DNA of 64,000 nucleotides from Saccharolobus islandicus REY15A (GCF_000189555.1 NC_017276.1); one strand, 5' to 3'; counted from the first letter of the stretch, positions 7,262 to 35,753 are shown. Notes: generated by a model not told the origin, from the letters alone. Numbers and translations: made by a program.

Positions 7262-8053
7262 TCACTTTGAAACCCTCCTTAGGAAGTTTTTAACTCTTTC
7301 CCATGCGTCTTCAGAGGCCTCTTTATTGTATGAACGTCCCCTATCGTTAAAGAACGCGTGATAAGCTCCGGGATAAATTTTGAGCTCTAAATCCTTCTTA
7401 TACTTTATTACAGCGGAAATTAGATCTGGTAACCCAGCATCTATGGGTGGATCCTCTCCAGCATATAGACCTAATATTGGCCCCTTTATTTTCTGAATTG
7501 TCTCCAATGGCTGGGGATTCCTGCCATAGAAAACTATTGTCCCATCTAATGGTACTTCAGTTGCTAACTGAAATGCTAAACCCCCACCCATACAGAAGCC
7601 CATACTAACTATCTTTTTAACACCTTGTGAGCTTACATACTCATAAGCCTTAATCGCGTCCTTTATCATCTGTTCCTCTGTTTTTTGTCTATTTAAAACC
7701 AACAACTCAGCTACTCTTTTGCCTTTTTCATCTAACGCTGACATTATTTGCTGATAAGAGTTTGGATCATTCCTCTTTTCTGGTGGTATGCTCCATACTT
7801 TCATCATTACGTTCTGGATGTTCTCCTGATTCAGAACGTCCTCATTCCTAGTGTATAATTGTGGAGCAAGTGCCATATAGCCCTCGTTTGCCAACCTTCT
7901 TGAAATGTCTTTTATATTGTCGTTAAGACCCCATATTTCATGTATTACTATCACTGCCAATTTAGGATTTTCTGGAGAAGCTAGGAAAGCCCTTATTTTA
8001 GCCCCCTCTGAATCGTAAAATATTTCCTTTTCCATATTTACCTTTACCGGCAA
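7262..8053 (-). CDS. Dienelactone hydrolase family protein
   Basis: IHEIWG, GFCMGG nucleophile motif, AYHAF. Confidence 0.92.
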   Translation of the reverse strand: MPVKVNMEKEIFYDSEGAKIRAFLASPENPKLAVIVIHEIWGLNDNIKDISRRLANEGYMALAPQLYTRNEDVLNQENIQNVMMKVWSIPPEKRNDPNSYQQIMSALDEKGKRVAELLVLNRQKTEEQMIKDAIKAYEYVSSQGVKKIVSMGFCMGGGLAFQLATEVPLDGTIVFYGRNPQPLETIQKIKGPILGLYAGEDPPIDAGLPDLISAVIKYKKDLELKIYPGAYHAFFNDRGRSYNKEASEDAWERVKNFLRRVSK

Positions 8054-8104
8054 ATGGTTTAAAAGTTAACTATCTATTTTTGTTAGATAAAAAAATAATT
8101 AACT

Positions 8105-9922
8105 TTAAATTAAGCCGGAATATAGCAACAAATCATAAACCATCGCATATGCATCATACGTTCCTGGACCAGTGACGTAGTTCCATCCATAATGGGCTGG
8201 GAATGGATTATTTCCACTAGTTATTGGTATCCAAGCTACCTTACCTACAAAATTACCTAGTGGAGATTCTATTATACCTTGATATGAAATGTGATACAAT
8301 GCAAAGTTGAGTGCACCTAATCTGGTACCCGCTAAGGAAACCATTGCAGCAGTCATAGGTGCTGCTCCACTAGTTCCATACCATACGAACAATTGACCGT
8401 TGAATACTAAAGGTAAACCGAAACCGAATTCTGGAATATTATAACCACCAGCAGATACGAATGCGATATCTGGATAAGTCCTAACTACAGTAGGAGTAAA
8501 TGGAATCAGTGAAGTTATCTCGTAACTTTGTGCTGGATAAACTACGCTATTACCTCCAGTACTATAATCCCAGCCACTTATTTCCACAATACTGCCATTA
8601 GGTGATGCATTAAGGAATACTCCACCAACTGACGTTACATAGGGATCTGACTCAGGGTACCATATAGTATTATATGTTCCTATATGGAAATTAGGAGGAG
8701 GATGATCACTTTCAAATCCCCAATCGCCAGAGGCCGCCAATACGGAAATTCCTTGCGCAGCAGCTTGCATCATTATATTATGAATCATATATAGCATTGC
8801 AGGGTAATAGGCTGCTAGGAAACTTTCTGGAACCGTTACAGAGATTGAAATAACATTAGGATTTATGTAGTTAACCATGTAATAGTACTCATAATAATAG
8901 TTTAGTAAATTGCCCACCAATTGAGGACCACCCACATAACCATTACTGAAGGCTATCGTAACGTTAGCTGCTGGTGCAAAGGCACCAGACCATTCTGCAT
9001 CTAACTCGTTTTCGCCAGATTGGCCTCCAGTTGTAACGTTACCGAAATATATAACGTTTAAATGACCAGTTCTAGGTATACCATAAAGTTGCCAGAACAG
9101 ATAGATATCTGATACATTTATAAAGGACTCAGGAACTCCCTCAATCGCGATATTACTACCGTTGCCGTTGTAACCGTGTTCATAGGCCATGGTAAAGTTG
9201 AAATACTTCCCTATTGTTATTGGTGAAATTATGGCCTTTGAAACTAGTCCACTTTGAGCTTTAACCATATCTAAATGCCACGCTTGTTTTATCACGTTAA
9301 CTACCTTGGGATCTAGACTATCTATCCCAACTACTCCTAATACGTATTTTCCAACGTTGTATGGTAATGAGGGAGTTACATTATTAGAGTAGTAGTAAAA
9401 TGGGCCAATATCCTTAATTCCTAGCAGACCAAACCAGTAGAGGTTCTTAAATGGATAGTAGTAGACGTTAATGTAAGTGTGAAATGCATTCTCTACGCTT
9501 CCCACGGTTCCATTAAATACTAGTATTAGACCATAATTGCCTAAAAATTCTAAGTTATAGGATTTTAGATAGCTTATTAGAGAATTCACATAGGATTTTG
9601 AAGGATAGTAGTACTCTCTAAACTGAGATGGGGTAAGCCATTTATGAAAGTGTGACGCTTGGAGGTAAGTTTCGTTAAGATATAATTGTAGAGAAGGTAA
9701 ACTAGTGAAATTTAAGAGAACTGCTATGTATAGTGGTTGGCTGGTGTTGAGAGGTTCTACAAATTCTGATCCTGGAACTATTGAGTATTGTGGAGAAGAT
9801 GTTTGTATATAGTAATATTGTTCTTGACTTTGCGCTATAGTTGCTAGGAAAGTCGTAGTACTTAGAACTAATATCAGAAGTAACATTAACAACCTTTTTA
9901 ACATTACATTTTCACTTTCCAT
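8105..9922 (-). CDS. Secreted S53 (sedolisin/kumamolisin-like) serine peptidase
   Basis: Signal peptide, pro-domain, ENELDAEW, AASGDWG, GTSGAAP. Confidence 0.9.
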   Translation of the reverse strand: MESENVMLKRLLMLLLILVLSTTTFLATIAQSQEQYYYIQTSSPQYSIVPGSEFVEPLNTSQPLYIAVLLNFTSLPSLQLYLNETYLQASHFHKWLTPSQFREYYYPSKSYVNSLISYLKSYNLEFLGNYGLILVFNGTVGSVENAFHTYINVYYYPFKNLYWFGLLGIKDIGPFYYYSNNVTPSLPYNVGKYVLGVVGIDSLDPKVVNVIKQAWHLDMVKAQSGLVSKAIISPITIGKYFNFTMAYEHGYNGNGSNIAIEGVPESFINVSDIYLFWQLYGIPRTGHLNVIYFGNVTTGGQSGENELDAEWSGAFAPAANVTIAFSNGYVGGPQLVGNLLNYYYEYYYMVNYINPNVISISVTVPESFLAAYYPAMLYMIHNIMMQAAAQGISVLAASGDWGFESDHPPPNFHIGTYNTIWYPESDPYVTSVGGVFLNASPNGSIVEISGWDYSTGGNSVVYPAQSYEITSLIPFTPTVVRTYPDIAFVSAGGYNIPEFGFGLPLVFNGQLFVWYGTSGAAPMTAAMVSLAGTRLGALNFALYHISYQGIIESPLGNFVGKVAWIPITSGNNPFPAHYGWNYVTGPGTYDAYAMVYDLLLYSGLI

Positions 9923-9968
9923 AATATGCTTTATCTATCATTTAATATAAACTTTATTCATATTTCAA

Positions 9969-10595
9969 TTATTGTTGATGAACAACATATATTGAATCCC
10001 AGAAGGACTTCTCGTAGTACTGAATAGTGTAAGCAATCCTTCTAAGTCTATCAACTTGGTAATCCTCAACTAATTTAACGATCCTATCCTCCAACTCCTT
10101 ATAAGAACCTCTGAATGCATCAAAGAATCCCGTCTCCCTAATCCCAAATCTCTCCTTTATCATATCCCCAAATCTAGTTACAACATTAGCCCATACTGGT
10201 AAATTCACAATTCCAGCAAATAGGAACTCTGAGGGTTTCGCGTAATTAGCTAACCAGGATAAATAGTGAGTGTAGCTTATAGCTTGAGGTGATACATTAT
10301 ATAGTAATGGGTCCTTTACCTCAATTCCCAACTCATTCATCAGTTTTACTAACTCCTTCAAAGCAGCATAATCTCCATCCACTAATATCTTAAATATATC
10401 GAGCTCCTCCATATTAGTACTCTTGGATAGACCTATTGCTAATGACCTTAAATCGTGGTTTACAATGTACCATTGGTTTATAACGAAACTATTAACTACC
10501 TCCTTTCTCAACACCTTCTCCTTTAATAAGGGGTGATTGATTATTTGCCCATTTAATCCTTCTAACTCTTTTCTTATCTGTTCTAGTATATTCAT
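9969..10595 (-). CDS. tenA: TenA/thiaminase II-like protein
   Basis: IINHP, FVINQWY, YYEKSFWD helical TenA pattern. Confidence 0.8.
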   Translation of the reverse strand: MNILEQIRKELEGLNGQIINHPLLKEKVLRKEVVNSFVINQWYIVNHDLRSLAIGLSKSTNMEELDIFKILVDGDYAALKELVKLMNELGIEVKDPLLYNVSPQAISYTHYLSWLANYAKPSEFLFAGIVNLPVWANVVTRFGDMIKERFGIRETGFFDAFRGSYKELEDRIVKLVEDYQVDRLRRIAYTIQYYEKSFWDSIYVVHQQ

Positions 10596-15053: not shown

Positions 15054-15844
15054 GACAAGAGAGTTTAAAAATTCCTATAAATGATTATACTTTAGATGAT
15101 AGGTAAAAACAAAATTGATGAGGAAGAGAGAAGGAGAAGAGAAGAAGTTAAAAGGTTAGTAATACTCTTAGCAATGTTAAGATAAAGGTTTTTTAAACTC
15201 AAATAATAATAATAAATATCATTATGTCAGTATTCTTCAGAACTAGGGATAGACCTCTACGTCCTGGAGATCCATATCCATTAGGTTCAAATTGGATAGA
15301 AGATGAGGATGGAGTAAATTTTTCCTTATTCTCAGAGAATGCAGAAAAAGTTGAATTACTCCTTTATTCACAAACAAATCAAAAGTATCCAAAGGAGATA
15401 ATAGAGGTTAAAAACAGAACGGGAGATCTTTGGCATATATTAGTCCCAGGGCTGAGACCCGGGCAACTTTACGCATACAAGGTTTATGGTCCGTATAAAC
15501 CGGCGTTAGGATTGAGATTTAATCCTAATAAGGTTTTAACTTAATTAGGGGTTAAGGGGGCGAAAGTCCCCTTCCGTAAGGTAGGGGATGAATAGCCCCC
15601 TTATAGAAACCTTTTTATTGCAAAAAATAGATAATTCTTAGGCCTCGGCTGTAAGAGCTGGGCCGTACCCTTGGGACTGGGGGAACTTACGCCTGTGGAG
15701 AGCAACCCTCCGTAACCCCTCTTCCACACGGGGCATTACAGAACGGTTCCGTTCGATGGAACCTCCGCTGTGGGTGAAGGGGGATCGAGGTTGCTCTGAG
15801 AAGCAGGAAATCCCCATCGTGAGGTGGAGATGCCCTGTCCGTAA

Positions 15845-26865: not shown

Positions 26866-27672
26866 ATGGAATCAAGTATTCAAGCTTTAAAAAACATCAA
26901 AACAGGTTCACTATATTACTTTTTAGCAATAATTATAGCTTTGGTAACAGAAGTAGTTATATTTAGAGAAAAATCACTGGCTAATAGCTTTTTCGTCTTA
27001 ATATTTGAGTTAGTCGCATATGGCATATTGCTAATAGGATTTTCAAGAATGAGAACTGGATTTTTCCAGTTATCGAAAACGATAAATACATACATAGGCA
27101 CAACTGGAGTTAACATATTTATTATCGGCATAGTAGCATTGCTATTCGGTGCTATTCTACCGATTTTAATTTATATAGGAGGTTCCCTAGTATTTATAGG
27201 TGACGTAATGATAGGTTATACTATATATAAGATAGGACAGAGATTTCAAGTAAATACAGAGAAAATTGCAGGAATTCTGGTAATGATATCTATAACCTCT
27301 TTCATAGGTTACATAATTTCCTACTTTGCTTCTGATGAAGTTATGAGAAAAATGCTTCAAGCCCCTAGGGAAGAAAAGCTACTAATAGTTCCTAGCGATA
27401 AGAGTATAGGTTACGGAATTTTAAAAAGCAACGGAGATGCAAATGTAGTCGTTTATTCTAAAGAGTCCTCTGAAATAATCTCAGCCCAAATTATGGGCTA
27501 CAATTTCCAGACATTACAAATCAATCCCAAAACAGTTATGGCGGGAGAAAATAGAATATATATAAAATTTGCTCTATCTGGAGTAATGTTTGTTCCGGGA
27601 AATATTTATAATTTAGAGATATTACTTGCTAATAATGAAAAATTATTAGCCTCCTTAGTTTATGAATTATAA
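26866..27672 (+). CDS. DUF973-like membrane protein
   Basis: TM domain plus C-terminal GYGILKSNG...IISAQI domain, paralogous to 60611-61504. Confidence 0.75.
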   Translation: MESSIQALKNIKTGSLYYFLAIIIALVTEVVIFREKSLANSFFVLIFELVAYGILLIGFSRMRTGFFQLSKTINTYIGTTGVNIFIIGIVALLFGAILPILIYIGGSLVFIGDVMIGYTIYKIGQRFQVNTEKIAGILVMISITSFIGYIISYFASDEVMRKMLQAPREEKLLIVPSDKSIGYGILKSNGDANVVVYSKESSEIISAQIMGYNFQTLQINPKTVMAGENRIYIKFALSGVMFVPGNIYNLEILLANNEKLLASLVYEL

Positions 27673-27834
27673 TTGGATATATACACTATAAGATACTCCC
27701 GCCCAATTAGAATTAATTAATGTATAATAAATTTGTTGTGCACCTAATTGACTTGCAGAGATGGCACCGGTAGGCGTTGCCAACATTAGTAACGCTAGGG
27801 ATAGGGTTAGAAGGGCTAGAAGGGACTTCCTCAT
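27667..27834 (-). pseudogene. Truncated secreted protein with A291-type signal peptide (55 aa)
   Basis: MRKSLLALLTLSLALLMLATPTGA...NSNWAGVSYS; below the ORF-track cutoff; runs into the DUF973 stop. Confidence 0.75.
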
Positions 27835-27875
27835 TGTAAACGAAAAAGGAAAGTGTAACTTTATAAAGGGCCTAA
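27787..27875 (-). repeat. Promoter + signal-peptide module, copy A
   Basis: About 89 bp similar to 29545-29635, with 33 bp identical; contains TAGGCCCTTTATAAAG. Confidence 0.9.
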
Positions 27876-28204
27876 GAAGTTAAGTAGAAAAAGATAATGC
27901 CTAATATAAGTATACATACTATAAGGATAGTTATTATTGCAAAAGGCAATAAGCCCATCCACTTATATTTACTGATTTTTAGATAATCGAATAACTTAGT
28001 AAACCAATAAACTCCACTTAATAATAATAACTTCTCACCGGTTAAGGTTATCAGAACGTCTAAGAAACTTGTGTTAGATCCTATGAAAACATTGCGATCC
28101 ATATAAAGCACTCCAAGATAGGAAAAAAGAAGTGTTGCACCATAATCAAATAAGTTACCTAAAATGAAGATGAGCCATAAGACCTTTAGCCTATCCATCA
28201 ACAT
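27872..28204 (-). CDS. Small membrane protein, SSV-like context (ATG probably 28198)
   Basis: GNLFDYGATL motif and 3 TM segments; lies between a B129-like ORF and a toxin-type promoter. Confidence 0.7.
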   Translation of the reverse strand: MLMDRLKVLWLIFILGNLFDYGATLLFSYLGVLYMDRNVFIGSNTSFLDVLITLTGEKLLLLSGVYWFTKLFDYLKISKYKWMGLLPFAIITILIVCILILGIIFFYLTS

Positions 28205-28207
28205 TAC

Positions 28208-28393
28208 CTAACTAACGCAGATATTGTGTTTTTTGCAAACATGGTCTAGGGTTGAATCAGTGTTTCTAAACTCTTTCCCGCACACCGGGCAAGTCTTTGC
28301 GTGTTCCGTATAACGGATGTGTTGTTTCAGACTAACTGAAGAGCTGAAAGGAGTTAAACAGAGGGGGCAGACGTAAGGACCTATAATTCCCAC
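28208..28393 (-). pseudogene. SSV1 B129-like tandem C2H2 zinc fingers, C-terminal half only
   Basis: VCPLCLTPFSSSVSLKQHIRYTEH..CPVCGKEF...DHVCKKHNICVS is nearly the recalled B129 C-terminus. Confidence 0.85.
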
Positions 28394-28434
28394 TTCATTA
28401 AGCGATAAAAAACTGTATAAGTTTATAAAGGGCC

Positions 28435-28635
28435 TTAGTCTATTAAACGCAACAGTAAGTCTATTACTGCCTTACGAAATTTGGGGCTTAAGTACATTGC
28501 AATCCCTAAAGAGGCTAAGAAGATTGCCAAAGCAATTTCCGAGGCGTATTGAACATACCATGGGGGGGAAGGTGGGCATGCATAGATACTTGTTATTGCC
28601 GGAACTCCTATACTACTGTTATAAACGTGACACAT
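28435..28635 (-). CDS. C124-like small membrane protein (candidate immunity)
   Basis: PSPPWY followed by a TM helix and basic tail; own TTTATAAG promoter. Confidence 0.6.
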   Translation of the reverse strand: MCHVYNSSIGVPAITSIYACPPSPPWYVQYASEIALAIFLASLGIAMYLSPKFRKAVIDLLLRLID

Positions 28636-28668
28636 GGGTATACTAAAAAGAAATTAACTTATAAAAAA

Positions 28669-29592
28669 TTATGCATAATAATTTGTTGGGAATAGTGGGG
28701 TTTCGCTATATGCTAGTTGTACAGTTCCGGTAATTTGTGCACCACTACTTGATGTATAAGCGTTTGCTGAATAGGAGTTCCCATTACTTAACCAATGAAA
28801 TCCATAATATTGATTAGTGGTTTTTGTAATTGCAGTAAGTATTGTGGAACTTAAGTTATAACTATATGTAAAGACTTCTGCAGAAGTAGATGGAGTTCCA
28901 ATCACATTAAATTGTATATTACTAAACGTTTCATTAGGCACTGGATAGAAAAATACGTAGTATGTTTTAGTTAATTGCACATTTAAAGGAATCTCGCCTA
29001 TTATTAGTGCACTATAAGGCACAAAAACGTATTGTGAATCTATCACAGACTGTGAAAATCCGTTATTAGGATCGTAGAACTGTGCGGTGAGTCCGTTACT
29101 ATAACATAATGATATCTGTATCATAGTACCTGCAAATTTGCTAAGAGGAAATGTTTTGTTATAGAATGTTGCACCAAGTCCGCTTTGTACGAAACATACT
29201 GCAAGATTAAGATATTGCCCACTTGTATTTGCAATTAGAACAATAGCTGCTTGTACAAAATAGTTACCAGAATAATTACTTGCAGGATATGGTGAGAGAG
29301 CTACCCATATTGCATACTTATCGACATTACCGCCAATGAGACTTGTATTAAAGTATGAGGGAAGACTTGATGGGATAGGAATATTTATTTGGGCATACGT
29401 AAGTGGTTGTGGCTGATTGTTATTTTCAAAACCAAAAACATAGCCTTGAAAATTTAATGTAGTAGTAGAGCCTACGCTATTTATCGGTATCGGTGATGAT
29501 GGCGGTATTATTACTCTTGCAATTGTTGGAGTTATTAAAAACGATAGTAACGCTAGGGATAGGGTTAGAAGGGCTAGTAGGTACTTCCTCAT
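28669..29592 (-). CDS. Secreted SSV A291/B310-like toxin, intact (307 aa)
   Basis: MRKYLLALLTLSLALLSFLITP signal peptide; LSPYP, FAGT, NGFSQSV, FVPYSALIIG motifs shared with recalled SSV1 A291. Confidence 0.8.
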   Translation of the reverse strand: MRKYLLALLTLSLALLSFLITPTIARVIIPPSSPIPINSVGSTTTLNFQGYVFGFENNNQPQPLTYAQINIPIPSSLPSYFNTSLIGGNVDKYAIWVALSPYPASNYSGNYFVQAAIVLIANTSGQYLNLAVCFVQSGLGATFYNKTFPLSKFAGTMIQISLCYSNGLTAQFYDPNNGFSQSVIDSQYVFVPYSALIIGEIPLNVQLTKTYYVFFYPVPNETFSNIQFNVIGTPSTSAEVFTYSYNLSSTILTAITKTTNQYYGFHWLSNGNSYSANAYTSSSGAQITGTVQLAYSETPLFPTNYYA

Positions 29593-29635
29593 TGTAAGCA
29601 ATAAAAAGGAAAGTGCAACTTTATAAAGGGCCTAA
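29545..29635 (-). repeat. Promoter + signal-peptide module, copy B
   Basis: Near-identical to 27787-27875. Confidence 0.9.
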
Positions 29636-29823
29636 TCTATTTTCGTCTAATGAGAAGGAAGATTGTTAGTGCTAATAATGCAACACTGACGGCTAATATT
29701 TCAGGCCATAGGTTTGCATAGGAAGGCGGTGGGATATAACTGGTTTCGGTAATATTGCCCGCAAAAATAGGGCCTAGAAATGGTATCACAGAATTGTTTG
29801 TCTGTATTGCAGACATATTTGAT

Positions 29824-31113
29824 GTTGCAAATAAAGGGGGTTAAGGGGGCGGAAAGCCTCGCCAGCGGGGATGGATAGCCCACTTATATTTAAATACTTC
29901 TTTGCCAATTTTCTGTCGATGGCTAGAAGGGTTAAAGCGATCAGAGCTAGTGTTTCTATGAAGATCGCTCTATCTGAACCCCTCCTAGTCCTCGTTAATA
30001 ACTATGTAAAGGCACTCCGTTTCACCCTATTTTGGTTAAAGGAAAATGTCCCGAACCCAGACGAGAAGGGAGTGCTAGGAAAAGTCCACGAGGAGTTGTA
30101 TGAGAAGTTAAGGGAGGAGTATAATCTACCATCAAAGGTTGCCGAGGATTGTTATAGGGATGCCCTCTCAGTGTACAAGGGATGGTATAATAATCCTAGA
30201 AGAGGGCGTTTTCCTAGAGTATACAAACCCACTGTATGGCTAACTCCTAAGGCTAGCTATAATGTGGACTTTGAAGCAATGACTGTTAGGATTGCAAGTG
30301 TTGGTGAACTTCAAATTCTAGGTTATCCGCGAAATTTGAAGGAATACATGAGTTGGAGGATGAAGGAGGCTAGGTTAGTGGTTAAGGATGGGAAGGCTTT
30401 TCTAAAAGTGGTTTTTGAGAAACCGTTGGAGAATGTTGAGCCAAAGGAAAGTGTTGCTGTTGATATTAATATGAGTGAGATTGTTGTAGGAAAGGATGAT
30501 ATTAACTACGTTAGGATCTCAACTCGTTTGCATGAGGTTCATCATTGGAAGTCTTTAGCTGAAAGCCTACAAAAGAAGTATCCTAGAAGGTGGGGGAGAA
30601 TAAGAGGATCTTGTATAGGATTCGTTTTTTCAATCAAAGGGCTAGGAGGATTTTGCTAGGAAGGTTGGGAGGTGGGTTGTTGAAATTGCTGGGGATTTTG
30701 GTGCTAATGTTGTTAAGTTGGAGAGTCTCAAGAATCTTGTTAAGAATGTTGATAGACTGCCAAGAGAGTTTAGGGATAAATTCTACTTGATGCAGTATCG
30801 TAGGATTCAATATTGGATTGTTTGGCAGGCTAAGAAGCATGGTATTCTAGTTGAGTTTGTTAACCCTAGTTATTCTTCTGTTTCGTGTCCTAAGTGTGGT
30901 AAAAGGATGGAAGAAAAAGGATATCGTTGGTTTAGGTGTTCATGTGGTTATGAGAATGATAGGGATGTTATTGCAGTTATGAATTTAAATAGGAGGGGTC
31001 TCTGACCCTCTCGTCTGCCCACCATATGAGAGATGTAGTCCCGAATCGATGGTGGGAACGATGATCCCTCTGGAAGGGAAACCATCGCCCTTTCAGGGCG
31101 GTGAGAAAGTCAG
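29824..31113 (+). mobile_element. IS200/IS605-family tnpB-only element, 1290 bp
   Basis: Follows TTGAT; left-end GGGGGCGGAAAG...GGATAGCCC hairpin; right end GGGCGGTGAGAAAGTCAG. Confidence 0.85.
29919..31005 (+). pseudogene. tnpB: TnpB, frameshifted near 30590-30650
   Basis: VAVDIN; later [10 protein letters not shown]...[14 protein letters not shown] in another frame. Confidence 0.88.
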
Positions 31114-31323
31114 TGTATACGGAAACTTAGTTACTATAACCGTTGCGGAGTGGTCTATTGAGTGCAGATAAAACGATATGCCGAGAAGAACTAGGACTAT
31201 TATTAATGTAGCCACAATTAATTTCTTCATTAAAGGAAAAAGAAAGGTTACCTTTAAAAAGTTATTCACCAGTAGTACATGACTCCTTGAGCACCATTAC
31301 CGCTAAACGTCCCTATAAAGGGC

Positions 31324-31659
31324 TTAATTTTTGGGTCTAATCATTGGAATTATAAGTATACTTAAGCCTATTGCGATTATGAATGGCCATAAGTTAGCGT
31401 ACCATGGTGGGGGAACATGTATAGTAGGTGACGGGCCATAATAAAGCCCTTCTGGCGATCCTTCATATGGTTGTGCTATATATGTTGGATGGCCGATGGA
31501 ATAGAGCCATAAACCTATTCCCGCAAGGGCTATTGATAAAAATATGGTCGATAGGCTTCTTTTATTTGGTTTTACCCTTCCAAAATCCGGTGAGAAATAA
31601 AGAGTTAAGAAAGCCACGATTATTCCGGCAACGAAAATTAGAAGTGAAAGGAATTCCAT
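31324..31659 (-). CDS. C124-like membrane protein, intact (candidate immunity)
   Basis: GIGLWLYSI and PPPWYANLWP+TM, matching recalled SSV1 C124 GIWLKSI and PPWYANLWP. Confidence 0.78.
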   Translation of the reverse strand: MEFLSLLIFVAGIIVAFLTLYFSPDFGRVKPNKRSLSTIFLSIALAGIGLWLYSIGHPTYIAQPYEGSPEGLYYGPSPTIHVPPPWYANLWPFIIAIGLSILIIPMIRPKN

Positions 31660-31690
31660 GTTAAAAAAAAGTAGGTTAACTTAAAATATC

Positions 31691-31987
31691 TTATGGTGAG
31701 ATCCAATACAAAGCGTAATTTAGACCGTTTATTGTATTATAACTCTGGCCTTCAGATAGCTGAACATAGTTTAATCCATGAGCGCTATAATCTTGTGGAG
31801 TCCCTATACTGAAATACCATGCATACGGGTTATACCAATAGTTTATGAACACGTTATGGAATAATGTTAAACCGGATTCTGCATAATATGACGGTATAGG
31901 TGCCGTACCGCCTAAGTAGTCGGTTGCCGAAGACTGCCCCGCAACTGCATTTATAGGTTCCGGAGCTACATTAATCCACACTCCATC
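31691..31987 (-). pseudogene. C-terminal fragment of a secreted toxin-like protein
   Basis: Y/N/S-rich, no start or signal peptide; its stop is followed directly by the next SSV-type promoter. Confidence 0.6.
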
Positions 31988-32050
31988 CCAGAGACTAAAG
32001 GTAAAAGTTTAGAGGAAGCATCAAGAGAGGCAGAGTTAACAAAAGTTTAA
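31988..32050 (+). pseudogene. Orphan C-terminal tail of a sugar-porter MFS gene
   Basis: PETKGKSLEEASREAELTKV*; PETKG is the sugar-porter C-terminal motif. Confidence 0.65.
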
Positions 32051-32278: not shown

Positions 32279-32716
32279 GTGATTATCTTGAAAGGTAACA
32301 AAATCGATTATCTATTTCTCCTCTTTGGTCTCTTAGGATTAAGCACAATGATCTACTCTTACCTATCCTTTGGCTTAGACGTGATAAGTAGGAACAGTTG
32401 TACCATAAATTCCGTGATAAGTTGCTCATCAGTGGAAAACAGTATATACTCAACGTTTCTAGGGATAAAATTGTACTACTACGGAATGGCCTACTTTTCA
32501 GCCATAATAGTACTCTCATTACTTGTCGTAAAGGGGACAGTAAAGAACATAATTGGTTACGTAATTTCCCTACTGAGTATTATAGCCTCCATCATATCGG
32601 TTTATTTAATATATACTGAAATATTCTTGTTAGGACACATATGTATAGTATGTACTTTAGCACATGTCTCAATTTTCAGCGTTCTAATCCTCTCCGTGAT
32701 TAAGTTCAAGGTATGA
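32279..32716 (+). CDS. Vitamin K epoxide reductase (VKOR) family protein
   Basis: CTINSVISCSSV loop cysteines and the CIVC active site. Confidence 0.88.
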   Translation: MIILKGNKIDYLFLLFGLLGLSTMIYSYLSFGLDVISRNSCTINSVISCSSVENSIYSTFLGIKLYYYGMAYFSAIIVLSLLVVKGTVKNIIGYVISLLSIIASIISVYLIYTEIFLLGHICIVCTLAHVSIFSVLILSVIKFKV

Positions 32717-33472
32717 CTACTTTCAAAAGCGTTCACTTAGCCCTAATACCGCAACTTGAGGAGAGATTGAGTAAAATTGGAGACGTTAAAGTAATGAATG
32801 AAGTTAAAAAGCTTAAGTCGGCCCTACCAAATAACGTAGTTCTAGTTACAATGGATAAAAACCTGGCTTCAAACATTTCGTTAAACTTGAAAACAATAAC
32901 GCTAGAGAGTTACGAATAAACAATACGATACGGGTGAGTTCTTACATTGCTTAAGCTATTACCCTCAATACAGTTTCAATAAGGGTTTTAGAAAGGTCTT
33001 ATACCTGGAATTTGAGGGAAAAGACGTAGGTAAGATCAGTTATAACACTGAGGATTTACTAACAGTAAACGTGGAGACGTTAGATAGTGAACTACCCCGC
33101 CCTTACGGACAGGGCATCTCCACCTCACGATGGGGATTTCCTGCTTCTCAGAGCAACCTCGATCCCCCTTCACCCACAGCGGAGGTTCCATCGAACGGAA
33201 CCGTTCTGTAATGCCCCGTGTGGAAGAGGGGTTACGGAGGGTTGCTCTCCACAGGCGTAAGTTCCCCCAGTCCCAAGGGTACGGCCCAGCTCTTACAGCC
33301 GAGGCCTAAGAATTATCTATTTTTTGCAATAAAAAGGTTTCTATAAGGGGGCTATTCATCCCCTACCTTACGGAAGGGGACTTTCGCCCCCTTAACCCCT
33401 AATTAAGTTAAATACAATTACGCCAAAGTTTTAGAGGCTAAAAAGCATCATAAAACCCTCTTCATGAACTAG
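32713..33472 (+). pseudogene. Hypothetical gene, frameshifted near 32915 and interrupted by SMN1
   Basis: Frame VETLD-I-KYNYAK is restored on removing 33087-33407. Confidence 0.5.
33087..33407 (-). mobile_element. SMN1-type MITE, intact, 321 bp
   Basis: Minus strand: TTTAA target (33408-33412), CTTAATTAGGGG start, TAGTTCAC end. Confidence 0.95.
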
Positions 33473-34844: not shown

Positions 34845-35753
34845 TCATTTTATTATGTGAGAAGCTATAATTTCTACCCCTTCCTCTTCAAGCTTCTTCT
34901 TTACCTTTTTGTCTACATAGTTTGCTACAAGGAATATTTTTATCTTCTTATCCTTATACTTAGTATAGAACAACTTTTTCCTTATGATAATTTGATCGTA
35001 AGCCCCTTTGTCTGCTAAATTCTTTATTTCAAATACGTAAACGTAATCATTGGTTTCGTAAAAGTCAACCTCAAACACCTTGCCTTTCTCTATCACTCCC
35101 TCTTCATCTTTTATCATACCATGTACTACTCTCTTAGGATCAACTCCGTGTAGCTCTAAAGCCTTTTTATAAAGTTTTAGCATTGTCCTTTCCATTCCTT
35201 TTCCCGCCCTATTAGTGAAACTTCCCACTTCTACTGAAAGTTTCATAACGGCTCTTTGTAATTTGCGTACTGCCTTCTGCAGACCTTCGATTGCCTCTCC
35301 TTGCTTTTTGACAGCTTCTTGAAGTGATGTTATTGCTTCCGTATGCTTATTCACCGTCTCTTGTAATGACTTTACTGCTTCTTGGAGAGATTGAATTGCC
35401 TCTCCTTGCTTTTTGACAGCTTCTTGAAGTGATGTTATTGCTTCCGTATGCTTATTCACCGTCTCTTGTAATGACTTTACTGCTTCTTGGAGAGATTGAA
35501 TTGCCTCTCCTTGCTTTTTGACAGCTTCTTGAAGTGATGTTATTGCTTCCGTATGCTTATTCACCGTGTTCTGTAACGAAGATATTGCTTCTCCTTGTCT
35601 CTTAACTTCCTCTTGTAAGGCTTTTACGTTAGCAATCGTTTCTTCTAATTTCTTTATAACTATTTCATCCTTAAGCTTGCCATATATTTTATCAGCTAAG
35701 GCTGAAAGTAATTGTGGATTGTTAAGGATCTCATCGGCAATCTTTCCACTCAT
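34845..35753 (-). CDS. Coiled-coil heptad-repeat protein with C-terminal PD-(D/E)xK nuclease-like domain
   Basis: 35-aa repeats; EVDFYE...VFEIKN motif. Confidence 0.8.
   Translation of the reverse strand: MSGKIADEILNNPQLLSALADKIYGKLKDEIVIKKLEETIANVKALQEEVKRQGEAISSLQNTVNKHTEAITSLQEAVKKQGEAIQSLQEAVKSLQETVNKHTEAITSLQEAVKKQGEAIQSLQEAVKSLQETVNKHTEAITSLQEAVKKQGEAIEGLQKAVRKLQRAVMKLSVEVGSFTNRAGKGMERTMLKLYKKALELHGVDPKRVVHGMIKDEEGVIEKGKVFEVDFYETNDYVYVFEIKNLADKGAYDQIIIRKKLFYTKYKDKKIKIFLVANYVDKKVKKKLEEEGVEIIASHIIK
35291..35567. repeat. 105-bp in-frame tandem repeat, about 2.6 units
   Basis: Units start at 35291, 35396 and 35501. Confidence 0.95.

Follow-up and report, generated by a model that had tools for sequence, protein, structure and literature searches.

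A fusellovirus-derived toxin-cassette array, apparently old and recombining, with one plausibly functional toxin gene in the chromosome of Saccharolobus islandicus REY15A

Between a gene for a DUF973 membrane protein (SiRe_0495) and a gene of the VKOR family (SiRe_0503), the chromosome of Saccharolobus islandicus REY15A carries an island of DNA derived from fuselloviruses (Sulfolobus spindle-shaped viruses, SSVs), which is described here from a stretch of 64,000 nucleotides (the window; positions are counted from its first letter unless stated otherwise). The region at ~452-477 kb of CP002425 (S. islandicus REY15A) matches the window with 100% nucleotide (nt) identity over 20.4 kb. The island lies on the minus strand at 27667-32005 (SiRe_0496-0502, about 458-463 kb of the chromosome) and comprises seven annotated genes, two of which already bear the label 'conserved proviral protein', namely SiRe_0501 (111 amino acids, aa) and SiRe_0498 (B111 type). 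It is made of three permuted partial copies of one ~1.9-kb viral segment and of an insertion sequence (IS), and only one of the three toxin gene copies, at 28669-29592, is complete. The comparisons reported below describe an old, recombining array of viral toxin cassettes with one plausibly functional toxin; the statements on the structure and evolution of the island are well supported. A literature search by gene names and locus tags found no published description of the locus.

Organization of the island

The fusellovirus origin of this DNA, proposed earlier in a reading of the sequence alone (the sequence-only reading), was borne out by database comparisons. Indeed, (i) the minus strand at 27667-31981 carries nine open reading frames (ORFs) or pieces of ORFs, all nine of which match archaeal-virus families in PHROGs, (ii) two segments (27826-28378 and 31314-31990) are 91-97% identical to SSV14 and SSVK1 (=SSV9) by blastn, and (iii) viral similarity at the blastx level extends to ~32005. 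Furthermore, tblastn queries taken from four SSV genomes (every ORF of 50 aa or longer) produced 29 matches, all of them within 27600-32000, so that no integrase, replication or capsid gene is present elsewhere in the window, as the sequence-only reading had also held. That reading had placed eight co-oriented ORFs or fragments at 27667-31987: their common orientation, on the minus strand, and their location hold, but there are nine pieces, of which the 58-aa and 59-aa ORFs are one gene split by the IS, and the protein-level similarity reaches beyond the right edge that it gave. No tRNA gene was detected in the 64-kb window with ARAGORN, nor any match to Rfam.

The viral plus strand corresponds to the minus strand of the window, and the order of the units is thus read from the VKOR gene towards the DUF973 gene. 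The source segment is composed of the zinc-finger gene (B129), B111, the T3 promoter, the toxin gene, small membrane genes and the start of VP4, and of no other part of an SSV genome; what remains of VP4 in the array amounts to 10 nt. Its three copies are permuted and partial, and the island is not a collinear provirus remnant. The features are listed in Table 1.

Table 1. Features of the REY15A island and of its two flanks, in window coordinates and in unit order
Unit	Feature	Position	Strand	Remarks
Right flank	VKOR-family gene SiRe_0503	32279..32716	+	145 aa
Unit 1	B310-type toxin gene, 3' remnant	31691..32005	-	last ~96-106 codons; 96-aa ORF 31691-31981, GTG start
Unit 1	Gene 2, C108 (SSV9) homologue	31324..31659	-	111 aa; phrog_9637 full length, E 2.7e-60
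Unit 1	Gene 3, 5' half, C124-like small membrane protein	31114..31260	-	within 58-aa ORF 31093-31269
Unit 1	IS200/IS605-family element	29827..31113	+	tnpB only; 1287 bp; inside gene 3
Unit 1	Gene 3, 3' half	29637..29826	-	59-aa ORF 29637-29816; C-terminal PPPSYANLWP motif and transmembrane segment
Unit 2	T3-type promoter	29593..29635	-	TTAGGCCCTTTATAAAGTT; TATA 29620-29627; 27 nt before ATG
Unit 2	Toxin candidate	28669..29592	-	307 aa (310 aa from 29601); only intact toxin gene
Unit 2	Gene 2'	28435..28635	-	66 aa; one transmembrane segment; phrog_20661, E 5e-26
Unit 2	End of unit: VP4 (T4) promoter and signature junction	28383..28433	-	TATA 28422-28429
Unit 3	B129-type C2H2 zinc-finger gene, C-terminal half	28208..28393	-	61 aa; two fingers; PF22034 B129_C2H2-zf, E 9e-16
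Unit 3	B111 (SSV9) homologue, membrane protein	27872..28204	-	110 aa (108 from second Met); phrog_8567, E 8.5e-45
Unit 3	Second T3-type promoter copy	27835..27875	-	TATA 27860-27867; 91% to SSV1 7813-7899
Unit 3	Third toxin allele, 5' remnant	27667..27834	-	55 codons; signal peptide plus ...NSNWAGVSYSVY
Left flank	DUF973 membrane protein gene SiRe_0495	26866..27672	+	Pfam PF06157, E 7e-74; 98-100% nt identity among strains

Unit 2 begins 9 nt past the stop codon of the split gene 3 of Unit 1. Its promoter aligns with the mapped box A and transcript start of SSV1 T3 and with the corresponding sequences of four other SSVs, among them SSV13, SSVK1 and the M.04.0.13 SSV, and its position implies that the transcript would be leaderless. 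The complete toxin gene is followed by gene 2', of which the C-terminal two thirds match the 72-aa gene located after the toxin in the M.04.0.13 SSV (95%, aa 30-72) and which is 91% identical by blastn to positions 9586-9769 of sequence L003. The unit ends with a junction composed of the first 10 nt of VP4 (ATGAAGTGGG), a 9-nt linker (AATTATAGG) and then CCTTACGTCTG, which lies in the middle of the zinc-finger gene.

Unit 3 opens with the second half of that zinc-finger gene, whose 61-aa ORF covers positions 72-129 of 129 of phrog_9259 and is 83% identical to SSV1 B129 aa 72-129. It continues with a homologue of SSV9 B111 (97% aa identity), a second T3-type promoter, 92% identical to the copy at 29545-29635, and the 5' remnant of a third toxin allele, which matches positions 1-52 of 301 of phrog_11028 (E 4.5e-22). 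In comparison with S. islandicus HVE10/4, where ~100 codons of this allele are retained in a frameshifted state, a deletion of ~330 bp between short TATAT repeats brings the remnant against the stop codon of the DUF973 gene. A near-identical promoter core, GGCCCTTTATAAA, thus recurs at the three TATA positions listed in Table 1, 22-27 nt before the start codons, and weaker TATA-like boxes precede genes 2 and 3, so that the TATA modules reported by the sequence-only reading are real. In addition, the GTG start of the zinc-finger remnant lies 4 nt after the ATG of VP4, directly behind the VP4 promoter (28383-28397). This promoter/zinc-finger chimera is kept in all strains that retain the junction, and a two-finger B129-type protein may therefore be expressed from the viral late promoter.

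Unit 1, adjacent to the VKOR gene, starts with the 3' remnant of a B310-type toxin gene, without any T3 promoter upstream. This remnant is similar to SSV14 p32 (aa 149-254, 91.5%) and SSV9 B310 (aa 208-310, 90%) by blastx and to SSV14 9574-10256 by blastn (96.8%), and covers positions 216-310 of 310 of phrog_15623. The next gene, preceded at ~21 nt by the TATA-like box ATATTTTAAG, encodes a protein with three hydrophobic segments, which shares 97% aa identity with the 111-aa gene product of SSV14/SSV13 and 79% with SSVK1 C108. Gene 3 has its own box, TTTTTAAA, at 31253-31260, a probable start (MKKL) at 31230 and a weak match to phrog_9637; its intact orthologues, of 115-118 aa, are found in S. 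islandicus M.16.4 and M.14.25. The 3' half of this gene is collinear with gene 3 of M.16.4, matches positions 77-107 of phrog_9637 and resembles SSV1 C124 (47% over 32 residues, aa 90-121, E 1.5e-6). C124 and B129 had been proposed as the matches of the genes around the toxin candidate: B129-, B111- and C108/C124-type genes are indeed present, but the 111-aa gene is a C108 homologue and the likeness to C124, which is weak, concerns the split gene and no other.

The IS that interrupts gene 3 shares ~74% nt identity with annotated IS605 OrfB genes, including that of Acidianus two-tailed virus, and is named TnpB-related in RefSeq. The corresponding interval (REY15A slot positions 1166-2452) is absent from M.16.4 and M.14.25, and the insertion is clean relative to gene 3 of M.16.4, with no target duplication. 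Its tnpB gene is split in two frames (29871-30659, 262 aa; 30718-31005, 95 aa) and is therefore probably inactive. A level of ~27 fragments per kilobase of transcript per million mapped reads (FPKM) is still recorded for the split tnpB in strain E233S.

The intact toxin candidate

The only complete toxin gene encodes a 307-aa protein that aligns with SSV1 A-291 over nearly its whole length (tblastn: 36% identity, 98% coverage, E 2e-14; phmmer: E 1.4e-25; 34-36% identity overall). It is ~50% identical to proteins of five Kamchatka SSVs (tblastn E ~1e-45), and the M.04.0.13 SSV and SSV12 are at this level. The allele shared by M.14.25 and the M.04.0.13 SSV is a relative at 51% identity, compared with 34% for A291, and another allele, at 47%, is found in its usual place on a fusellovirus contig from a metagenome, ahead of VP4, C166, VP1/VP3, VP2 and B277. 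The family is tiny: six clusters at 90% identity among 5.8 billion proteins, and eleven representatives at 50% identity among 1.84 billion. In a tblastn search, the REY15A allele itself was not found in sequenced viruses, where the best match is at ~50%. The order of the genes is that of the T3 toxin class, namely T3 promoter, 307-aa gene, 66-aa transmembrane gene and VP4 promoter with the VP4 start, after which come the truncated zinc-finger gene, B111 and a further T3 promoter. From these sequence comparisons, the 307-aa gene is a new allele of the A291 clade of SSV toxin candidates.

The signal peptide (residues 1-25, within a hydrophobic segment of residues 1-31) is identical to that of A291 at 22 of 25 positions, and the cleavage predicted between Ala25 and Arg26 aligns with A25 and L26 of A291; the predicted mature protein would have 282 aa, a mass of 30.9 kDa and six N-glycosylation sequons. 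The gene at 28669-29592 is thus intact, with signal peptide and T3 promoter; the sequence-only reading had described it as intact and with a signal peptide. Its assignment to the toxin family holds for A291; as regards SSV9 B310, which had been named together with it, no match was found by tblastn and hhalign gave a probability of 2% between A291-type and B310-type alleles, the detectable sequence similarity between the two types being limited to the signal peptide.

The AlphaFold2 model of the protein is all-beta (predicted local distance difference test score, pLDDT, 73; predicted template-modelling score, pTM, 0.73). In a Foldseek search against the PDB, the first match was scytalidoglutamic peptidase 2ifw (E 4.4e-6, template-modelling (TM) score 0.50, target-normalised) and the next the Fibrobacter GH16 glucanase 3axd (E 1.9e-5), with modest TM-scores of 0.37-0.51. 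The model thus predicts a beta-sandwich of hydrolase-like fold. Relatives of the protein are labelled 'Peptidase A4 family' or 'Thermopsin' in databases, labels that find no support in Pfam, NCBIfam or PDB sequence: indeed, neither the 307-aa protein nor five relatives had a match in Pfam or NCBIfam at E values up to 1, a sequence search of the PDB gave none, and a search from SSV13 p30 for a link to a peptidase family returned two matches, without Pfam domains. Gln114 (in F-V/L-Q-A-G/A) and Glu200 (in A-L-I-I-G-E) are conserved in most members, A291 having Glu and Ser there, and their contexts presumably resemble those of the catalytic Gln and Glu of G1 peptidases. Peptidase activity of the 307-aa protein would be a lead, not a result. 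A match to the same Fibrobacter GH16 glucanase was previously reported for A291, B310 and SSV10 ORF299 (PMC13431529).

A contig of 941 nt from the Logan assembly of DRR326940 contains a copy 96% identical to the 307-aa gene in nt and 93% in aa, without promoter and signal peptide. Its first 80 nt are unmatched among the sequences compared, and it could be either a chimera of the assembly or a shortened copy from some other strain or virus. The ends of Logan contigs were also considered as evidence of transcripts and set aside as ambiguous, since they coincide with repeats or with the IS.

The slot in other genomes and exchange with viruses

The distribution of the locus among species was taken from exact-protein look-ups of the flanking VKOR protein. 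Nine S. islandicus genomes, of Icelandic, Kamchatkan and North American origin (REY15A, HVE10/4, CP046616, M.14.25, M.16.4, two Kamchatka drafts, L.S.2.15 and L.D.8.5), have an identical 145-aa VKOR beside the slot, and three genomes of S. solfataricus (LT549890, CP160827 and CP050869) a 99%-identical one. In all of them (9/9 and 3/3, respectively) the interval between the DUF973 and VKOR genes, 1.5-5.1 kb long, holds genes of the SSV T3 module, and the viral DNA adjoining the VKOR gene starts at the same viral coordinate, SSV14 9574. Genomes of the S. shibatae type, with a VKOR 90% identical, have GDPD and M20-peptidase genes beside it and no SSV module. Furthermore, the junction between the VP4 start and the middle of the zinc-finger gene has identical breakpoints and linker in REY15A, M.14.25, M.16.4 and L.S.2.15; it is also present in L.D.8.5, as judged by coordinates, and in inverted copies in several strains. 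This novel junction is common to all arrays that retain that part.

That an illegitimate junction and its chromosomal site are both shared is a sign of a single ancestral capture. The proposal of the sequence-only reading that this particular host had captured the viral module is therefore abandoned: the slot is occupied in all 12 genomes read, and the capture is old and not specific to REY15A. One SSV segment of ~1.9 kb was captured once, before the lineages of S. islandicus and S. solfataricus read here diverged, and comprised the 3' half of the zinc-finger gene, B111, the T3 promoter, the toxin gene, one or two small membrane genes, and the VP4 promoter with the first 10 nt of VP4. The slot of S. 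solfataricus is 98.7% identical to that of L.S.2.15 over its whole length of 3.4 kb, an identity that exceeds the one between most S. islandicus strains.

Full-length toxin alleles are found in REY15A (307 aa), in M.14.25 (304 aa, 98.7% aa identity to that of the M.04.0.13 SSV) and in M.16.4 (290 aa). The 290-aa gene of M.16.4 (CP001402), at 7720-8592 on the minus strand of sequence L017, shares 81% aa and 84.5% nt identity with SSV1 A291, has a T3 promoter and is followed by a C124-like gene.

A fixed remnant of SSV DNA at tRNA-Thr[GGT] (SiRe_2413-2417) is known in all S. islandicus strains (PMC3718332). The identity of the island with this remnant, or with one of the listed clusters of atypical genes, was considered and rejected, coordinates and locus tags being different; indeed, the locus is missing from the integration sites and the clusters of atypical genes listed for REY15A in PMC3718332.

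Within the slot, the segment made of the toxin 3' remnant and the C108-type gene is, in REY15A, 97.6% identical to SSV14, 97.1% to M.16.4 and 93.4% to HVE10/4, unlike the flanks of REY15A and HVE10/4, which are 100% and 99.5% identical. For the same segment, M.14.25 is 98.0% identical to SSVK1 and M.16.4 98.5% identical to SSV14, yet M.14.25 and M.16.4, both from Mutnovsky, share 94.2%. The cassette sequences thus track particular SSVs and not the relatedness of the hosts. A sliding comparison of REY15A with HVE10/4 gave 98-100% identity over the first 500 aligned bases and 57% in the next 100; past this point, inside the C108-type gene, REY15A is 99% SSV14-like. This is a sharp recombination breakpoint inside the REY15A C108 gene. 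Moreover, blocks conserved among divergent SSVs are found at the boundaries of the units: the core common to the T3 and T4 promoters, the codons of the signal peptide, the 3' end of gene 2 together with the promoter of VP4, and the second (3') half of the zinc-finger gene.

The sequence patterns show that the array has since gained, replaced, inverted and lost units and received an IS, by a mechanism that would most likely be homologous recombination with infecting SSVs or with other strains. Crossovers could have occurred at the conserved blocks, namely the GGCCCTTTATAAA core shared by T3 and T4, the codons for the signal peptide, and the 3' ends of gene 2 and of the zinc-finger gene.

Two further features of the window lie outside the island. 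A 310-bp element is present in two 100%-identical inverted copies (15535-15844 and 33103-33412), with 52% GC compared with ~35% for the genome; it starts with TTAC, has a predicted fold of -116.8 kcal/mol and no Rfam match, and looks like a miniature inverted-repeat transposable element or an IS200/IS605-derived element. The copy at 33103-33412 occupies the place of a FlK-like thioesterase gene that is intact in other strains. In addition, SiRe_0508 (34845-35753, minus strand) encodes a 302-aa coiled-coil protein with near-perfect tandem repeats of 35 residues, corresponding to DNA repeats of 105 nt with 93% identity (35268-35592); the orthologue has 267 or 302 aa depending on the strain, and the number of repeats therefore varies.

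Function, alternative explanations and comparison with known systems

Previous experiments with SSV toxins give a frame for the function of the 307-aa gene. Expression of B310 alone, with host machinery only, leads to a secreted activity of ~34 kDa that inhibits non-carriers; intracellular expression of B310 protects the producer from exogenous B310, in a manner that appears allele-specific; and the small downstream gene C108 alone neither inhibits nor protects (PMC8628083). A291 is required for the growth inhibition caused by SSV1, and the signal-peptide mutant A25L/L26A is inactive (PMC13431529). In PMC8628083, linkage of small transmembrane genes with toxin alleles is described and C108 did not protect; no immunity gene was identified in the island, and its description as a toxin/immunity module in the sequence-only reading is not upheld as regards immunity.

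The M.16.4 slot contains a 94%-identical C-terminal fragment of B310 and a 98%-identical C108-type gene. Strains RJW002 and RJW004 presumably derive from the M.16.4 lineage. Both are inhibited by B310 (PMC8628083), and since M.16.4 carries these remnants, the remnants would confer no immunity. The 72-aa gene 2 of M.16.4 was considered as an explanation for the insensitivity of RJW002 to SSV13 p30 and was dropped, the p30 allele being different from the M.04.0.13/SSV12 type.

By homology with these systems, the 307-aa gene would be transcribed into a leaderless mRNA from its T3-type promoter, and its product exported by the Sec pathway and cleaved after Ala25, releasing a ~31-kDa beta-sandwich, hydrolase-like protein, possibly an enzyme of the glutamic-peptidase type suited to pH 3. 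This product would slow the growth of Sulfolobus cells in which this allele is not made, the producer being protected by its own expression, as for SSV9 B310, and REY15A would obtain from an SSV toxin, without the virus, both self-protection and a competitive advantage, apparently at modest expression. We regard as evenly balanced the proposition that the island is a T3-module cassette array, captured once and recombining, whose 307-aa gene is a secreted and self-protecting toxin. The chance that this gene has some activity would likewise be near even, and a role of the island in rendering REY15A either able to kill or resistant is offered as a hypothesis.

Several observations weigh against this interpretation, and most of them favour its main rival, according to which the island is inert viral debris, that is, a decaying SSV fossil subject to chance overwriting, in which the 307-aa ORF is intact through recent arrival and brings no benefit to the host; we consider this a real possibility, although a minority one. 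Truncation or disruption affects two of the three toxin copies as well as the zinc-finger gene and gene 3, the latter through the IS, and the ~330-bp deletion has reached the edge of the DUF973 gene. No full-length toxin is present in HVE10/4, CP046616, L.S.2.15, L.D.8.5 or the three S. solfataricus genomes, and in L.D.8.5 the conserved C-terminal toxin fragment is interrupted by a stop codon; with 4/9 S. islandicus and 3/3 S. solfataricus genomes lacking an intact toxin, there is no uniform selection for it. The 96%-identical copy in DRR326940, devoid of promoter and signal peptide, points in the same direction. As for expression, the island genes have DESeq2 standard errors of 0.63-1.17 in one REY15A data set, against 0.35 for the DUF973 gene, which indicates low counts. 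In E233S, the B111-type gene is at 2-4 FPKM, the toxin 3' remnant at 1-7, the C108-type gene at 26-39 and the hypothetical gene SIRE_RS02555 at 31-39, the 307-aa gene being assigned to SiRe_0500 or to SIRE_RS02555/02560 by gene order only; with the flanks at ~32 (DUF973) and ~27 FPKM (VKOR), the island, at ~2-40 FPKM, is far below highly expressed genes. These values suggest low to moderate expression and not the high level of T3. Furthermore, SSV13 p30, an allele of a different class, produced no halo on cells free of infection (PMC8628083), so that not every allele kills naive cells. Finally, the 'integrated SSV' genomes MK054209-MK054235 were assembled from host reads pooled by SSV similarity (PMC6452263) and could contain, in their toxin regions, reads from the slot; for this reason, the key comparisons rest on SSV1, SSVK1, SSV12, SSV13 and SSV14, sequenced from virus preparations. 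Against inert debris, the locus persists at one site in S. islandicus and S. solfataricus between flanks 98-100% identical, three full-length alleles, complete with their promoters and signal peptides, are kept by three different strains, and the gene family is active with host machinery only (PMC8628083). The 307-aa ORF has no stop codon or frameshift, and its ratio of nonsynonymous to synonymous substitution rates (dN/dS) is below 1 (0.24-0.52 against relatives, 0.48 between viruses), although this ratio does not distinguish changes on the chromosomal branch from those that took place in viruses. The use of dN/dS as a test of domestication was abandoned, as values of 0.13-0.55 cannot tell chromosomal from viral constraint and the counts for the 96-codon fragment are small.

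The two other explanations are less likely. A function in resistance only, in which a full-length allele expressed at low level and/or the small membrane proteins would shield the host from SSV toxins without any killing, would agree with the protection, apparently allele-specific, conferred by intracellular B310 alone, with an expression level better suited to protection than to killing, and with the presence of different alleles in different strains. We nevertheless judge it unlikely, as C108 alone did not protect, as the M.16.4 derivatives RJW002 and RJW004 are still inhibited by B310 in spite of the B310 fragment and C108-type gene of that slot, and as a protein exported with an intact signal peptide would reach neighbouring cells as well. 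An ordinary remnant of a site-specifically integrated, tRNA-adjacent SSV provirus would have a precedent in the fixed remnants at tRNA-Thr[GGT] (PMC3718332), but it is highly improbable here: the 64-kb window has no tRNA gene and no Rfam match, tblastn found no integrase fragment and no SSV gene outside the T3 module, the locus is absent from the listed REY15A integration sites, and the copies are permuted and partial. Neither an insertion in a tRNA gene with integrase halves nor a collinear remainder of VP1/VP3, VP4 and B251 was found, and the provirus was rejected.

A broader and more tentative extension of the cassette-array interpretation, which we hold to be rather doubtful, is that the slot between the DUF973 and VKOR genes serves as a cassette bank trading toxin alleles both ways with fuselloviruses, by recombination at the common promoter core, the codons of the signal peptide and the blocks at gene ends. 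The hosts would gain protection that depends on expression, and sometimes killing, against carriers of banked alleles, and the viruses would draw new alleles from the chromosomes. The slot would then represent, in archaea and from a viral source, what orphan toxin/immunity arrays are in bacteria, and the standard laboratory strains REY15A/E233S as well as M.16.4 and its derivatives would not be toxin-free backgrounds.

The SSV toxins were described only in 2020-2026 and have been treated as virus-borne, and A291 was stated to have no clear homologues in NCBI (PMC13431529). Here, all the genomes examined of S. islandicus and S. solfataricus have A291-type and B310-type sequences at one fixed, non-tRNA chromosomal site. 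Should the intact copies be active, antagonism and resistance among Sulfolobus strains would be partly host-encoded, the argument for virus-host mutualism would have to take in hosts that retain the weapon but no virus, and the published toxin assays would have used backgrounds that carry such genes (the M.16.4 homologue and the S. solfataricus remnants). Since M.16.4, the published reference host for SSV toxins, has an intact A291 homologue, tester and expression backgrounds may not be toxin-free. Moreover, the locus offers a tractable system for measuring recombination between viruses and chromosome in archaea.

Among known systems, the closest to Unit 2 are the fusellovirus T3 toxins (A291, B310 and SSV11 p29), with which it shares the T3 promoter, a length of ~300 aa, a small downstream transmembrane gene followed by the VP4 promoter, the signal peptide of A291 and the same predicted beta-sandwich fold. 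It differs from them in being chromosomal, without a virus, in being a new allele with no detectable sequence similarity to B310, and in an expression that appears far below that of T3 in carriers; by homology, its product is a putative toxin. With the provirus at tRNA-Thr[GGT] (PMC3718332), the island has in common a species-wide fixation of SSV DNA, mosaic affinities and the lack of a working integrase, but it occupies another locus, has no tRNA or integrase fragments, contains the toxin module only, in permuted units, and shows recent virus-like tracts and intact toxin genes instead of uniform decay. At the level of the predicted fold, the G1 (eqolisin) glutamic peptidases provide the best structural match, 2ifw, and Gln114 and Glu200 are conserved in most members of the family; the sequences nevertheless match nothing in Pfam, NCBIfam or PDB, and A291 departs from the pattern at both positions.

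The cdiA-CT/cdiI loci of contact-dependent growth inhibition (CDI) and the Rhs orphans of bacteria consist of arrays of truncated toxin fragments with small adjacent genes. The island resembles them in its tandem truncated toxin fragments, in its strain-variable content at a fixed locus, and in its conserved blocks beside a hypervariable toxin part, which could be recombination handles. Its source, however, is a virus module and not a cellular secretion system, its handles are the promoter core, signal-peptide codons and gene ends and not an N-terminal constant domain, and it has no identified cognate immunity gene, small genes of this type having failed to protect in published work. The analogy with the killer toxins of yeasts, which are encoded by viruses or satellites and have chromosomal homologues and self-immunity through the preprotoxin, was already drawn in PMC8628083 and extends to the island: although the proteins are unrelated and belong to another domain of life, a secreted toxin of viral origin would benefit its carriers, the precursor may confer immunity, and copies are found in the chromosome.

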